A DNA stretch of 64,000 nucleotides from Pavona decussata (Eukaryota): positions 5,828,001 to 5,892,000 of the forward strand of contig CDRNST010000020.1 in assembly GCA_977016875.1 (NCBI GenBank). Reading direction: 5' to 3'. The notes beneath the pieces were generated by a model. It was not told the origin of the DNA, searched no databases, and worked only from the letters and a program-made list of their open reading frames with translations. Shown here piece by piece: positions 2,465 to 44,224 of the stretch. The first letter of the stretch is position 1. Each line of letters opens with the position of its first letter. Both the position numbers and the translations under genes were made by a program.

Positions 2465-3420
2465 GCGAATTATTATAGTGTAAGCTGGACTGTGCTGGAC
2501 GGAAGTCACCCATATTGGTGCTTATTACAGACCACATGTAAGTGATGAGGAGAGTTTAATAGAGCTGGAAAAATCGCACATTTTGTTCAACAGCAGCCAT
2601 AATATCCTCCTGGCATGGGAGTGGAAAAGTCATCAGCTTAAGCCAAGCTTACATGGAAACCTTGACAACTTTTCCTCTGACTTGTTGGATTACTGTGGTC
2701 TTGTGCAAATAGTGGAAGAAGCGACTAGAGGACAAAATTTATTAGACCTAGTTGTAACTAAGAACTCCAACTAGAATCTGCCAGATAGACTTTGTATTCG
2801 GCATCTCTGACTATGTTTGTCCCTTGGTTGAATTAAATATCAAACCTATAGGCCATCGACAGGTCCCATGGAAAACCCCCCCTCTATAGCAAAGCCCAGA
2901 GGGGTATATTTGAGGATGACCTACATGCCACATTTGAGCAAATTTAGGCTAACAAAGACACAATGTCAGTGAATGATCTGTGGTTTTTGTTTAAGAATGC
3001 CATTCACAAAGGCGCCCTTAAACATATCCCACATAAGACCTGAAAAAGGAAAGATAATTTACTTTGGATAAATCATGTGATTAAATGCCTTTTTAAGCAG
3101 AGAGAGATTGAACATCAAGCGGAAGAGAGCTTGAGTACAAAATGACACAAACTATTTCCACCAACTTCAATTGAAAATGAAGGATATTAAGAAAAAGATT
3201 CAGAAAGAAACAAGAAGAGGATTTTGGCAATCTGTCGAATCCATTATTACTCCTAAGGAGGATGATTCTTATCAGTACTCAGGGATGAAGAGATTTTGCT
3301 CCTTTGTCGAACATCAGAGAAAGGACATGGGAGTATCAGCTTTAAAAGGTGACGATTGAACCATATCAGATTCCAAGGATAAAGCCAATGGCCTAAATAG
3401 GCATTTCTTCTCAGTGTTTA
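2465..3420 (+). mobile_element. Non-LTR retrotransposon relic (APE endonuclease C-terminus and linker)
   Basis: Fragments LVQIVEEATRGQNLLDLVVT, GISD, WIN, RFCSFVEHQRKDMGVSALK and DKANGLNRHFFSVF are typical of LINE ORF2 between APE and RT. Many stops. Confidence 0.7.
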
Positions 3421-37745: not shown

Positions 37746-40143
37746 GGATGGTGCTGTGAAAGGCTTCGTGCATTCCAACTTGAAGAATAATTTTAATGAC
37801 ATTTTAAAATATCTCGACAGCAAAAGGGACAGGGATGTGTTGGAGGCCATTGTTGCCAAAATAACAAGTGTTAAAAATGTCGTATCACTCAAAGGAACCC
37901 AGCTCAAGGGCAGTGTAAGTGGGCACTGAGCAAACTTGAATGCAAAGCTAAAAAAATTCAAGGACATTGAATTTAATTTACTGACTGTGAGAAATGACAT
38001 GACTGTTTCTCAGCAGCATAGTCACATCCAACGCACAGCAAAGAAGAGGAAAGAAGAGAATATTAGGACAATTGCAGAAGGAAGAGGAAAAAAAGCTGAA
38101 ATGTGAAGAGTACCTAATGTTTACATTACCTTTTTATTGACGAAAGGAGGAAAAGTGCCATATTGGAATGACCTTCTTCTTTAAGCCTGAACTTTCAATT
38201 TCAACTTCATTCTTATATACATACACCAACAACTATCGGAAAGGCACAACACAAATAAAGCGACACCATCACGGACGGGAAATCAACGCTGATGTGTCAC
38301 TCCATAGAGCTCCCAATACTTCCGAGGAGGTTGCATCCACTAAACGCACATTGGATGTCGTCACATGTTAATTATCTTGTTGACTCTGCCGCTGAAAAAC
38401 CGAATTCTTTCTTTATCGACTCTAAGTATGCAAAATGCATTATTTGTGGAGACGTTCAGCCAGTTCTAAAGCCCGGGAAAACGTGGAGAAACTTTGAAAC
38501 TCCAGATCATACATTTGATCAATCACGAGTGAATGCAGTCACCCCAAGAAGTCATTTGTTTATGGAAGTTAGATAACAACCGGAGTTGGATAATGCCAGC
38601 CTTTTAATTCCAAACACAGATGTTGTTATTAATGTCACGAGAACTGGGAAGGCTGTGACCCCCGTAAACCTTTCTTTAACTGAACCGGAGACGGTTTTTC
38701 GTGTTCTTAATGAACTGTTTCTTCTTACAGTATGTCAATTCCAAGCTTGGACAAGTACTTCCGCAATCAGGAAACAGGAAAGCTAAAAGAAATAATGGGT
38801 TTCATTGTAGACAATGGTCCATCAGAAGCAGCAAGCAATTTACTAGTCCAGATGCTGCTTGTTCGGTTTCTCAATTTCCTTGATCTGGATAAAGTAACTC
38901 AAAGATCATTCGCAGAATATTTGAGAGAAAGGAACTTTGTTGAACGTGTACACACAGTTAAAAACAAAGTTCTTTCAGATCGTGGCCCGTTTTCCTCTCA
39001 CCATGTACATGAGCAAGCATCTCCTGGAAGTAAAGACCACAACAAAAACATGGAGCACATTGCTAAAGAAGTTATCGATTGCATTTCAAAAGGTTTCTTT
39101 AGCAAAGAGTCTATTGAGTGTTTCTGGGGAATTGGAAGCAACAAAAACTTCATATTTAACAATGAAGTTGGCTTGAAATCTCTTAGGCTGCTATCTGAAG
39201 AAGGGAGAAAAGAGGATGAAACAATTTATCAACCTATGAAGGGTGAAATTTTGAGCTATTTGGAAAATGTGTGGTGGGCAAAAAAGAATTTAAGGGAACA
39301 TATGGCGAAGATTATGTCGCACTTAACTTCTTCGAATAGACCTTACATTGATAATTGCAGCACCTCGATATTTCGGGCATGTGAATGCTAGAGAGGACAG
39401 AAACCACTTGAACGTTTTGACCCTCAGCCTTTGCCAGATTTTAAACTCTGGGAAAAGCTGGGTGAACTACATTACATGGGTTTTGAGGAAGGACGGGACT
39501 TCCCAGTGGGACCATGGGATGAATGTCCCGCTCATTTTTTGTCGGAAAAGGTCCTTAGCCCCTGCTTTAGAGTGTTACCACAACCATCAAAAGGAACCAT
39601 GAAGTCTATCGCTTTTCTCGCTTGGGTGTCGCCTGATGAGGCCTCTGCATACTTCATCAGTATGCACGGGAAACTGCAAGCACAGAAGAATGACGATATG
39701 AAGAGAGAAACATGGAAACACCATCCTTTATATCGAGAGAGTAAAGAAACCCTTGTCAAAATGTGCAGTGAATCTAAGCTATTTCCCTCTGGAAAAAAAC
39801 ACGAACTTGTACAACGGATTGTACAAAACCACCCAAGCAAGGAGGATGAAGCGCCCTGTCTAGACGAAGTGAAACTGTATGATGGAAAGATAGAGTCCAT
39901 ACCAAACTCTAGTGCTGGGCTAATGCGATTGTCTTTTGCTCAACTTACTACGAAAACCACGGATGCGTGGAATGGGACCGAATTTTGGTATCACCACCCT
40001 GCCCACTTTCGTTAACAAATTCCATAAATTCCTGGGTCCCTGTGACTTTGCCGCCATTGAAGTGTTGCCGCGGCCGCTTGTCTGAAGTGTAGCTGCTTGG
40101 CGCCGTTTCTATTGTACTAGTAGAAAAACACATCGCTGAAATC

Positions 40144-41555
40144 ATGGAAAGATATGTCTTTAAAATTGCGGGTCCAAGTGGAAAATGGATAAAGATTTTT
40201 ATGAGTACAAAGGAGGGTAAAGCTTTGACTATGGAGGCCTTGTTAGAACAAATTATTGAAAGATTTCCAAGCCTAGGAAAGCGGAGTGTTGTAGGTTTAA
40301 AGTACCTTGATGGGAATGACTGGTTCGAACTTCTTGCGGATGATCTAGATTCCTTCATAGATATGATTGAGACAGCAACAGTAGAAAGAGAACACTTGAA
40401 ACGAATAACGCTAAAGGTGAACGAATTAGCATTAATGCCGCCCAGGTCGGAAATTGCTGGGAGAACATCTCAGAAGCGTCTTCGAACATCAACATCGCCA
40501 GTTGCTAATTCCGAGAAAAGTACAACAGGTGTTGACAATGCAAGAAAGAAGCAAAAGCGAGTCGCATTGAGGTGTTTCGACGAACAATTATCCACTACCG
40601 AGCCCGTGTTTCAGTACGAAACGGCAACTCAAAAATTCTTCAACAAACTTGACTCAGAGAAGAAACAACAGCAAGAAATAATACCGAAGAAAGAAAATGA
40701 ACTTTTGGATCTTGAAATGAGTTTCAAGGTGTTAGTTGCAAATACCAAGCCGTTGTGTTCCAATTGTCATACCTCGGGGCATAACAAGACAATGCGTTCA
40801 TTTTCTGCTTGCATTTCTGCGCAATCATTCTTATTATAATTTGTAAAGACATAAAGAAACATTCCGAGGAGGAAAGATACTATAAATCGTTGCAAGCTGA
40901 GCTTAAAACCAGTAAGACCAAATTGAAGAAACTGGATGAAGATTTCGCTTCAAAGGAGGAACGTTTTGCCTCTAGTATGAATACATTTGCCGCTAAAGTA
41001 CAATCGGATCTGATTAACAGCAATAAAGCAAAGTATTTGCGGCAAACGGTGACCGGCGAAAGAGTTCCCAACTGGCTCGTAGTAAACACTGATATAAGAA
41101 AACTAGAAAGAATTTGTCACGGTAAAATTCCCTCTCAAAGTGAAATGCAGCAACTGTTAAATGAATACAATGAGAGCTTCGCTGTAACTTTGGAACCGTC
41201 GAGAAAATCAAAAGATCGCTCCATAAACCGGGTGCAAGACTTGTGGGAGCAAAAAGGAATCAATTTTCCTTGCAAAGGCATGCTGCCCAACAGTTTTACC
41301 ATTCGACACAGTCAAGGCGTAATTTACGGAAGACTTACTAGCAGCAGTACTAGCACAGCTGCTGTCACCGCATGCGGTCCTCAGTTACTGTTGGATGAGC
41401 CTACAACTTTGAAAGAAGAAAATCGCCACCTGGAGTTGGGACTGAAAGAAAGTTTAAAAATGTGCCCTTCAAATGTGTTAAACAATCATGATTCCAGTCA
41501 GGATTATGGCCTTTCATTGCTATTTGAAGCTGCAAAGCTTGTAAGCGTTGACTGA
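40144..41555 (+). pseudogene. ORF2 of the DD37E element: PB1-like, CCHC knuckle, coiled coil, UIM-like
   Basis: Two ORFs joined by one frameshift at about 40830; motifs LKYLDGNDWFELLADD, CSNCHTSGH and EENRHLELGLKESL. Confidence 0.65.
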
Positions 41556-41994
41556 ACGGAAACACTTCGAAGAAAACAATTTCAGTTCTCTGTTGTACTA
41601 CCTTGTGTTAGTTTTGAAATATTATTGGAATAATCACAGAGATGAAAGACTTTCCATAGTATAGCATTGCGTGACATTCGAGTGCAGTGTTGTGGCAGTG
41701 TTAAGTTGTTGTGTTTACAGGTGTTTTACTATCAGTCATAAACTGTACGTTCTTTACTGAGTTCAACTTCAATTAACAATTTCAGAAGTTGAGTTTCAAA
41801 TAAATCAGTTTTTTTTGTTTCTCGATGCGCACAGTGTACGCGCAGTTAATTAACACTTTACATTGGCAGACTGATGTCTCGCTCAGTTATTGCTTCCCAT
41901 TTCAGACAATAAATATTTACATGTTAAGTCTGCCTTTTGATCATAGAATGAAAAGCTGGAAAGAATGAGAGTTTCTTCACGTTAAATGTAGCCA

Positions 41995-43010
41995 CTATAG
42001 GCAAAAAATCCTCTCATATCTCCAGGCATAATTCTTCACTGCTTCGTGAACTGCCACATGCAGACTGTCTCTCAAAAGTTCTCCATACTCGAAGCGTCTC
42101 AGGGTCGTCTTTAGCTTGTTGAAAACATGTTCGGCTGGGTTGAATTCAGGGGAATATGTTGGTAAATAGACGGCTGTGCAACCAATGTCATCCAACCATT
42201 CACCAAGGGCCTGTCCTGCCCGGTGACGATGAATTGGCGCGTTGTCAAAAGCTACATTATCATCATAACTGTACGCCGGTGTACCATCGGGAAGATAAAC
42301 AGAAGCTGCTTCTTCGAAAAAATTTAGAAAAGTAAGCGCATTGCTGTTACCATCAACCGTGTTGGCATAAAGAATTCTGTCAACACCACACATAAAATTT
42401 AGTGTGATATTTGGAGAAGTTGCATACCGCACGATCTCAACAGCTGGAGTGCCAATAAGAGAATGACCATAGTTAGGTCTTCCAACATCTGGAAGCTTGA
42501 TTCCTGATTCATCAAAGAACTTAAGTTTATACGGGTCAACTGTGGAAATATAATTAACATAATGCTGACAATAATTAATGTTGTCTTGGGGTGAATTTCT
42601 CTGCAATGGGCCTTGTTAACTTTTTCCAGGTCCGTTTTCCATCGGTCATTGTGTTTCGGAGTACTCGCCGAATAGCTGTATTTGATGTTCCTGTAGCAAT
42701 GTTACAATTGTCATTCGTATGCTTATACCACTCACCAGCAGTCATTGAAGCTCTATCAGTCTTAAGAAATCTTGTAAAGTCAATATCATCCTGCTGAATT
42801 TGCTTTACGCCAGCTGCACGCGTTTTTGTAATTCCTGTATCGCCTTTTTCAACCACTTCTTTCCAAATTTTCGGCACAGTATCGAATTTGACCGTTTCTT
42901 TCAGCAATGGCTAAGAAATTCCCGGGGAAAAAGCCAGTTACAAAGTCACCGCCATCTTCAACAATATCTTTTATTTTTCTTCTCAAATCAAGTTAAAGAG
43001 GTCTCCCGTT
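41995..43010 (-). pseudogene. DD37E transposase (DDE_3 / IS630-Tc1)
   Basis: FFDESG, FDNAPIH and YLPTYSPEFNPAE, with 37 residues between the second D and E. Frameshifts near 42590, 42900 and 42025. Confidence 0.9.
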
Positions 43011-43990
43011 GATATAACATCTACCTCGTTTACTGGTAACTTCCGCCATCGCAACAATGGCTCTCGTGTTTGTTTTTACTAGTAAAAAAAATCGCGCAAA
43101 CTTGCCGCCCACCGCCAGTATCCAGGAATTTGTGGAATTTGTTAACGAAAGTGTGCGGGGCAGTGATACGAAAATTCAGTCCCATTCCACGCATTGGTGG
43201 TTTTCGTAGTAGAGCAATTTTAAGAGGACAGCGAATTTTAGAAGTGGGCACAAAGGAAGAGCTAATTGCAAGGGTGGGGCTTTTAAAGGCAGGTTTTCCC
43301 GAGGCTGCCTTCTCAAGAGAATATTTATGTATACTGCATATTATTGAGACAGCTAAACTAATCACAAAACCTCAAGGTGAGCTGAATATGAAAACTGTTT
43401 GTCGTCGCAGAACATTTTCTCATGGGTAAGACAATACCGTCACCACAAGAACGTCATGTCTCAAAGACATGCTCTCTCTAAAAGCTCCATCTATTGAGGT
43501 TGAAAACATGCAGAAAAGAAATGTTGAAGATTTTCTTGACGCCTTAAAGGTCATTGTCGGCAAGGACGAAGAAATTTCGCGGCAAATAGTTGATGAACTT
43601 AAAAAGAAAACTAGAAAATTACAGGGCAGTGAAAAATGAAAAGTCAACAACGACAGCATGTAAATCCAAACATGAAAACATTGTTAAAGCAGAATGATGT
43701 GAGGAAAACGTCAGACAATACTCTGAAAGAAAGTGAAAGATTCCAGCAAAGCTTCGAGAGGGAGGAGGAACAGAGGGTAGAAATTCTTCGCGGTAGGCCA
43801 GACGGTGGAGGTTTCATGGAATAAAAAGGATTTAGAAGGAACTAGCTGGAAACCGGGGTGGTATAGAGGGGAAAAACAAGGAATCGACGAGGAGAACGAT
43901 GTTGTTTTCATTTGGTACTTTAAGGATCGTTCTGTGTACAGTCTTGATGCTACTGGGTCTCTCGTAGATGGCATTATTCGTCCAGTTAAT

Positions 43991-44224
43991 AGAGAGATTT
44001 AGCATCGCTTTTACGGCAAACGCCAGGCTGAAATTTTCTCTTTGATGAAAAACAATGAAGCTTTTTTTGGTTTAAGCTGATCCCCACCCAGTCGGCGACA
44101 GCTATCAAGCAAAAACGAAAAAGAGAGAAGCGAGTATGAGAATCAAGCTTATGCATTTTAGCGCAAAGAGCGATTTGTCGTTTCCTGTTTGGCATTAGTC
44201 GTAAACGGGAAGCTAAATCTCTCT
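43991..44224. mobile_element. MITE, PHIS (Harbinger/Pangu)-type
   Basis: TIR AGAGAGATTTAGC..TTTACG / CGTAAA..GCTAAATCTCTCT; AAT TSD at 43988-43990 and 44225-44227. Confidence 0.85.

Follow-up and report, generated by a model that had tools for sequence, protein, structure and literature searches.

The stretch of DNA analysed here (hereafter the window) comprises 64,000 nucleotides of the Pavona decussata genome (assembly GCA_977016875.1, contig CDRNST010000020.1, positions 5,828,001 to 5,892,000 of the forward strand). A dead full-length copy of a two-gene DNA transposon of the IS630/Tc1/mariner type occupies its positions 39948-43209 (3262 bp). Tc1/mariner-type elements are textbook single-gene transposons. 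The window copy possessed a DD37E transposase pseudogene on the minus strand and, convergent to it on the plus strand, a second open reading frame (ORF2), which is a conserved element-encoded gene under purifying selection in relatives outside this genome.

Structure and insertion site of the element

An inverted-repeat search and a comparison with paralogous empty sites placed the element between terminal inverted repeats (TIRs) and TA dinucleotides. The two inverted arms (39946-40035 and 43122-43211) measured 90 nt and were 90% complementary; as they include the flanking TA, the TIR proper is 88 nt long, located at 39948-40035 on the left (plus strand) and at 43122-43209 on the right (minus strand). 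The left end reads TA followed by CTACGAAAACCAC, with a CTACG terminus common to the intact relative L034, and the right end reads GTGGTTTTCGTAG followed by TA. Two paralogs of the surrounding repeat on other contigs (L036 and L037), with similarities of about 73% and 65% to the host repeat on the two sides of the site, read CAACT-TA-GAGC without any insert. Since these empty sites have a single TA where the filled site has two (39946-39947 and 43210-43211), the boundaries 39948 and 43209 are exact and the TA was duplicated at insertion, so that the complete TIR- and TA-bounded element given in the preliminary description stands to the nucleotide. TA also flanked 11 further ends of family copies, deletion derivatives among them.

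The element interrupts a long open frame that belongs to another repeat (window 38181-39947 and 43210-44036), in which SAP-like helices flank the insertion on both sides (weak match to PF18953, E = 9e-4). Paralogs of this host repeat on contigs C256 and C96 were without the insertion.

The transposase pseudogene extended over 41985-43049 (minus strand) in four pieces (43049-42894, with one stop; 42889-42590; 42609-42034; 42035-41985), each sharing between 57% and 70% identity (tblastn) with the intact 356-aa transposase of the relative L033. The Pfam family DDE_3 (PF13358) matched a window piece with E = 7e-17 and the intact relative with E = 2.8e-19. By hand count, 37 residues separate the second D (FDNAP) from the E (NPAEH) in the window translation, so that the catalytic triad is DD37E, and the D-37-E spacer was counted by hand in the transposase of a sister element (described below) as well. 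The DD37E transposase and the convergent ORF2 had both been named in the preliminary description.

ORF2 spanned about 465 codons with one frameshift, in agreement with that description. Its first part (40144-40821, plus strand, open frame, codons 1-226) covers a PB1 domain, a basic Ser-Pro linker, the first coiled-coil helix and the start of a zinc module; the second part (40836-41555, plus strand, open frame, about 239 codons and the stop) covers the end of the zinc module, the second coiled-coil helix, a small helical/beta domain, and the helices of the C-terminus, one of them similar to a ubiquitin-interacting motif (UIM). Between them lies a 14-bp frame-shifting insertion (about 40822-40835, the alignment leaving a few bases of play in its placement), which is not found in the copies of contigs C104 or C45. 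A spacer (41556-41984) separates the two convergent genes. All motifs previously named for ORF2 were present in the window copy. Pfam searches with the window's own ORF2 pieces returned noise only (Rubrerythrin and others).

Affinities of the transposase

Named relatives of the transposase came from Scleractinia, Octocorallia, Actiniaria and two hemichordates. Among PDB sequences no transposase was matched, Mos1 and Sleeping Beauty included, and the paired-like N-terminal helix-turn-helix family PAX (PF00292) matched neither the L033 transposase nor the window copy. The element resembles the L31 (DD37E) group in its DD37E signature, TA duplication and TIRs, and in having a transposase far from classical Tc1 and mariner. 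In bivalves and hexacorals, L31 elements reportedly possess an additional ORF2 without an assigned function; a literature search on L31 found the group mentioned, with no description of an ORF2 and no L31 sequence. The group was defined from the oyster element Mariner-31_CGi (Puzakov et al. 2018, cited in PMC7325037 and bioRxiv 10.1101/656579). The L31 hosts listed in PMC7325037 are bivalves and a nematode, whereas the named relatives found here are anthozoans and hemichordates.

Decay of the family in this genome

Copies were sought in the whole 602-Mb genome. Besides the window copy, the search recovered a long copy on contig C104 (element positions 1-2618), two rearranged ones (C45 and C369), and about ten shorter copies (836-910 bp), deletion derivatives in which only element positions 1-274 and about 2658-3262 were retained. 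Divergence between family copies was about 8%. The four long copies were all broken, each in a different way, and the differences between the window and C104 ORF2 were distributed nearly evenly over the three codon positions (36/28/41). The family is therefore dead and drifting neutrally in this genome, and the window copy now does nothing.

The deletion derivatives (L008-L015, L019 and L023), each with TA at its flanks, are similar to miniature inverted-repeat transposable elements; among them, the pair L014 and L015 on C233 resembles a segmental duplicate, with identical flanks. Short, low-depth contigs in three runs, all from a single sample that was guessed to be RNA, covered 39983-41903 (ORF2 and its 3' flank), and a DNA run covered everything. 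The transposase half was represented in the guessed-RNA runs by 42073-42247 only, in a single run, which may reflect ORF2-side transcription of family copies or chance; since the sample type is guesswork and transcription cannot be demonstrated from contigs, this pattern was not used as evidence.

ORF2 as a conserved gene of related elements

Among 1.8 billion representatives, the N-terminal piece of ORF2 retrieved 74 homologs and the C-terminal piece 22. With a full-length homolog as the query, a dozen intact proteins of 415-502 aa were obtained, the only named ones being hypothetical proteins of the stony coral Oculina patagonica. Intact ORF2 relatives were located beside intact convergent transposases in no fewer than five further assemblies, that of O. 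patagonica among them, and a convergent DDE_3 transposase followed ORF2 wherever the flank was long enough (L033, L034, L039, L040 and L057-L061). The 3201-bp contig L033 had both genes intact, as did L034, which possessed 98-nt TIRs (95% complementary) and CTACG ends preceded by TA; At L040, on a chromosome of O. patagonica, an intact ORF2 faces a transposase of the DDE_3 family. Five contigs of element length, each from a different run (L057-L061), encoded an identical 453-aa ORF2, one of them together with a 354-aa transposase.

The same 453-aa ORF2 was recovered from six runs of one series (L057-L062; Logan runs SRR26904552-59), five of the contigs measuring about 3.1-3.2 kb. This suggests that the element is high-copy and was recently active in that organism.

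The two genes have diverged in step, with identities between L033 and L034 of 45% for ORF2 and 56% for the transposase. Synonymous sites were saturated (pS about 0.8) in most pairs, so that the ratio of non-synonymous to synonymous divergence (dN/dS) was taken from two unsaturated pairs only, in which it was 0.22 (dS = 0.82, 450 codons) and 0.25 (dS = 0.13, 331 codons). Selective constraint on ORF2 was thus found among the relatives (0.22-0.25) but not among the copies of this genome, which decay neutrally (36/28/41). A literature search found no PB1 domain linked to a DNA transposon, which is not proof of absence.

A PB1-type domain at the N-terminus of ORF2

The structure of ORF2 was predicted with AlphaFold2 for an intact homolog (P0024) from a 94-row alignment, with a mean predicted local distance difference test (pLDDT) score of 75. 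Residues 1-96 of the model, corresponding to about residues 1-96 of the window ORF2 (40144-40431, plus strand), had pLDDT values above 90 and the topology b-b-a-b-b-a-b. Foldseek ranked PB1 domains first (NBR1, with E = 8.6e-4 and a template modelling (TM) score of 0.74, then p62/aPKC, MEKK3, MEK5, Par-3 and Par6). VIA-align 2, an independent all-against-all structure aligner, likewise gave its four highest ranks among 48,161 PDB chains to PB1 domains (NBR1, Z = 11.9; Par6, Z = 11.6; the AtNBR1 filament, Z = 11.1; p67phox, Z = 10.4), followed by TFG and p62, and the NBR1 PB1 domain superposed over 85 of 86 residues with a root-mean-square deviation of 2.1. A domain profile compared with solved structures matched, apart from one chance row, PB1 only (AtNBR1 and Cdc24, E about 0.05, over the OPCA region). 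Pfam PB1 (PF00564) matched 19 of 34 members at a lenient threshold (best E = 1.7e-5), with two sequences above the cut-off of 23.6 bits: P0204 (24.9 bits) and L064, a paralog from P. decussata itself (25.9 bits).

The residues of the two PB1 interaction faces were conserved as well. The beta1 lysine was kept in 26 of 29 sequences, and the acidic motif Y-x-D-x(2,3)-D-W-x-x-L-x-x-D-D-x-D-S-F, which the AlphaFold2 model places on beta3, beta4 and alpha2, the location of OPCA, was kept at 88-100% (Y, 32/33; D, 33/33, 29/32, 33/34, 30/34 and 33/33), with Asp or Glu at the first position of the D-D pair in 26 of 34. The window copy itself retained Lys7 and Y54-x-D56, D59-W60 and D66-D67-x-D69-S-F. 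Together, the fold, the profile matches and the conserved lysine and acidic residues identify the domain as a PB1 with basic and acidic faces, and the PB1-like N-terminus proposed earlier is now a well-supported, predicted PB1-type beta-grasp. A prediction of self-association between two copies of the window PB1 gave a score of 0.00, which weighs neither for nor against binding.

A predicted two-zinc helical core

Beyond the PB1 domain, residues 99-147 of P0024 were disordered, basic and rich in Ser-Pro in the AlphaFold2 model. Residues 150-345, folded alone (pLDDT 88), formed a long antiparallel hairpin of helices that bears the zinc module at the tip and is followed by a small helix-strand domain. 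The module (window 40756-40862, plus strand, split here by the 14-bp insertion) follows the pattern CX2C-H-X3-H-X4-C-X4-C-X5-C-X5-H in the relatives, and its eight ligands (C, C, H, H, C, C, C, H) would be enough for two zinc ions. Every ligand column was conserved in 23-28 of 26-30 sequences, and also in paralogs with SAM-type heads. The CX2CX4H knuckle of the preliminary description, conserved among homologs together with the coiled coil, proved to be part of a fuller form, CX2CX4HX4C, in the relatives and in the C104 and C45 copies; in the window copy the last Cys of the knuckle, its fourth ligand, is replaced by Arg.

Pfam zf-CCHC families gave no match above noise, and nothing in Pfam exceeded its cut-off in the full-length homologs save PB1 in P0204. 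For the central domain (P0024 residues 150-345), Foldseek returned no PDB match at E <= 0.001 and an Atlas shape search nothing above TM = 0.37; VIA-align 2 found only generic helical hairpins (Z <= 9.6, within helix noise), and a PDB profile search only chance matches. With P0024 as the query, a feature search of the ESM Atlas retrieved nothing usable.

Two conserved helices at the C-terminus

The C-terminal part of ORF2 possessed two short conserved motifs. The first, EENRHLELGLKESLK (41414-41458, plus strand), is a UIM-like helix found by alignment, an acidic run followed by phi-x-x-G/A-x-x-x-S; it reads EE-x3-L-E-x-G-x-x-E-S-L-K, was predicted as an isolated helix and was retained by 10 of the 13 C-terminal sequences in the alignment. 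The second, DYGLSLLFEAAKLVSVD (41502-41552, plus strand), closes an acidic tail and is an amphipathic helix with the pattern phi-phi-x-A-A-x-x-phi, present as G-L-x-L-L-F-x-A-A-x-phi-phi in every full-length homolog (helix pLDDT 65-80).

Two patterns are given in PMC1557813 for Sin3-interaction domains (SIDs) that bind PAH2, phi-phi-X-A-A-X-X-phi for Sp1-like proteins and phi-Z-Z-phi-phi-X-A-A-X-X-phi-n-X-X-n for Mad. The stretches LLFEAAKLV, LLFRAASFL and LLFSAAQFL fit the shorter one, as a match of pattern only, and with the longer Mad pattern the helix agrees over the first 11-12 positions. The resemblance of the terminal LLFxAA helix to Sin3-interaction helices noted earlier therefore extends to a published pattern and to all full-length homologs. 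Like the SIDs of Mad1 and of Sp1-like (KLF) proteins, this would be a short terminal amphipathic helix, predicted only in the case of ORF2; unlike the SID of Mad1, which is N-terminal, it lies at the C-terminus, and its trailing acidic positions fit in part.

The Sin3 gene of this genome was located at G000:C104:1921378-1923871 (minus strand), with PAH1 and PAH2 split by introns and PAH2 distributed over three exons. An LC3-interacting region (LIR) in the DYGL/YEGL stretch of ORF2 was considered and rejected, as the spacing from aromatic to aliphatic residue differs between clades.

Related elements with other N-terminal heads

A profile of the central domain matched 32 places in this genome, four of them with an uninterrupted 426-codon frame. 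One belonged to an apparently intact sister DD37E element (L053:2285-5954; G000:C24:160284-163953), in which TIRs of 116 nt (98% alike) enclose a 407-aa ORF2 and, convergent to it, a transposase of at most 377 aa. This transposase possessed DDE_3, the D-37-E spacer and PAX (PF00292; 35.1 bits against a cut-off of 22 bits; PAX matches were also precomputed for several relatives), and was 36% identical to that of L033. The sister ORF2 matched P0024 residues 124-372 (E = 2e-17), a region that takes in the hairpin, zinc module, small domain and UIM-like helix; its UIM-like motif, EEEEQLCMARQLS, has the canonical form, and the protein ended in EAANILL. As at least four sister copies keep the 426-codon open frame, the sister family looks young. 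Further sister copies were present on C6, C239 and C88.

The N-terminus of the sister ORF2 differed from that of P0024, and its first 70 residues are not PB1. Its only matches among PDB sequences were SAM domains, both full-length (EphB1, E = 0.12; ARAP2, E = 0.63), and three of its six top Atlas feature matches were SAM families (scores 0.82-0.84); Pfam gave no SAM match. The sister head is thus a probable SAM domain. Other lineages in the genome share the zinc core, one with a textbook PB1 and others with SAM-like heads. Head-to-tail polymers are built by both PB1 and SAM domains, the folds of which are unrelated. The apparent exchange of PB1 for a probable SAM on one core is the main argument that self-assembly is the property kept by selection. 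Sister elements with a probable SAM head and a zinc module recall Polyhomeotic-type SAM proteins with a zinc finger, but they have no FCS finger and no sequence relation to them, and their SAM assignment is weak.

The PB1-bearing lineage (L064:3257-4300, minus strand, on G000:C354) encodes a 348-aa protein in which a textbook PB1 (OPCA motif YRDEDGD, 25.9 bits) is joined to the same zinc/coiled-coil core. The UIM-like helix and the C-terminal helix that mark the window's family are both missing from this protein. At another locus on G000:C22, a protein with a SAM-like head and the zinc module (L065:3198-4289, minus strand) stood in tandem with a DDE transposase (L065:891-1673, minus strand), for which a D-to-E spacer of 38 was counted. 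As these genes are tandem and not convergent, the gene order of two-gene elements is not fixed.

Possible functions of ORF2

On balance, the two-gene element is best read as one in which ORF2 is probably a PB1-polymerising accessory adaptor that docks host factors and controls expression or transposition of the element. ORF2 would self-associate head to tail through PB1, the zinc module would hold nucleic acid, and the two C-terminal short motifs would dock host factors, the best guesses being ubiquitin and a helical-groove domain such as a Sin3 PAH. ORF2 could in this way set the place or the strength of the element's expression or transposition. A polymerising ubiquitin/co-repressor adaptor, as the preliminary description had put it, is a reasonable proposal given the motifs. 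Close parallels are p62/SQSTM1 and NBR1, in which the modules follow one another in a similar way, from an N-terminal PB1 with basic and acidic faces through a zinc module and a coiled coil to a ubiquitin-related motif close to the C-terminal end. ORF2 differs from them in sequence (13-17% identity), in having a CCHC knuckle and HCCH instead of a ZZ finger and a UIM-like helix instead of a UBA, in the absence of conserved LIR spacing, and in being encoded by a transposon.

Several observations weigh against this adaptor role. The structure was predicted for a homolog 49% identical to the window sequence, not for the window sequence, the N-terminal 100 aa of which gave no Pfam PB1 match even up to E = 10, and the central domain had no recognisable fold match. 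The UIM-like helix stood up as a motif that is present and conserved among homologs; it was less secure as a UIM, since it had no Pfam UIM match, was lost in the P0013/P0009/P0019 clade, and had Gly in place of the canonical Ala in most members (Ala being found in P0012 and the SAM-type paralog). The SID pattern is degenerate, occurring by chance in about 1 in 15 proteins of such size by a rough estimate; being so loose, it makes the Sin3 resemblance a lead and not a finding. Finally, the SAM assignment of the sister family comes from weak matches only.

Among the alternatives, the one that survives best is a cofactor of the Harbinger type, in which the zinc module would bind the element ends and the C-terminal helix (or PB1) the cognate transposase, bringing the transposase to the nucleus and the TIRs. 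PIF/Harbinger elements (transposase plus a Myb/SANT-like protein) are known to require a second, DNA-binding protein, and they resemble the present element in having a second, non-catalytic, selected gene and non-autonomous derivatives that keep the ends only; derivatives of this kind would be mobilised in trans. The strict pairing of ORF2 with a transposase, the joint divergence of both proteins and a basic stretch in the linker similar to a nuclear localization signal fit this cofactor too. PIF/Harbinger nevertheless belongs to another transposase superfamily, with another target duplication and an unrelated accessory protein, fold searches with the central domain of ORF2 recognised no DNA-binding fold, CCHC knuckles generally favour single-stranded nucleic acid, and most Tc1/mariner elements transpose with the transposase alone, so that a Harbinger-type role appears possible but doubtful.

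The preliminary description had suggested that ORF2 is perhaps an anti-silencing or regulatory factor. In the anti-silencing case it would polymerise and titrate or redirect Sin3/HDAC and ubiquitin signalling away from the element. The supported PB1 fold, the conservation of the SID-like and UIM-like helices and the presence in this genome of a Sin3 with PAH domains are all compatible with this role. Its evidence is nevertheless at the level of motifs, a SID would more simply recruit repression to the sites of ORF2 than relieve it, and the UIM-like helix is dispensable in one clade, which makes anti-silencing an unlikely role.

A nucleocapsid- or Gag-like RNA chaperone of retroelement origin, kept by a DNA transposon for RNA handling, would account for the knuckle in CX2CX4HX4C form and the long helical hairpin, and one weak row of the Atlas shape search was a Gag polyprotein (TM = 0.31). 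Such an origin is very improbable, as neither a capsid-like fold nor any significant similarity to Gag, in sequence or in fold, was found, the knuckle belongs to a larger eight-ligand module not seen in Gag, and PB1 or SAM heads are foreign to Gag. A captured host gene fragment carried as passive cargo without a role, which would suit the neutral decay of the copies in this genome (36/28/41) and the cellular NBR1 as nearest PDB fold match of the PB1, was already disfavoured and is scarcely credible in view of the full-length intact ORF2 kept beside intact transposases in several divergent lineages, the dN/dS of about 0.22-0.25, and the retention of the same core with different N-terminal heads.

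A bolder extension of the adaptor role, which we regard as rather improbable at present, is that the ORF2 proteins of anthozoan DD37E (and related) Tc1/IS630-type elements form an undescribed class of accessory proteins, i.e. polymerising scaffolds with interchangeable PB1 or SAM heads and a two-zinc coiled-coil core, whose UIM and SID-like helix would tie the element to ubiquitin signalling and Sin3/HDAC. If so, these elements would encode a chromatin or condensate module of their own that sets their activity. As the window copy is a fossil, it is the protein family and its intact relatives that deserve attention, and with the latter bench testing is possible. A second gene under purifying selection across divergent lineages, apparently built from modules for polymerisation and for co-repressor and ubiquitin docking, points to an unstudied layer of the interaction between transposons and their hosts.

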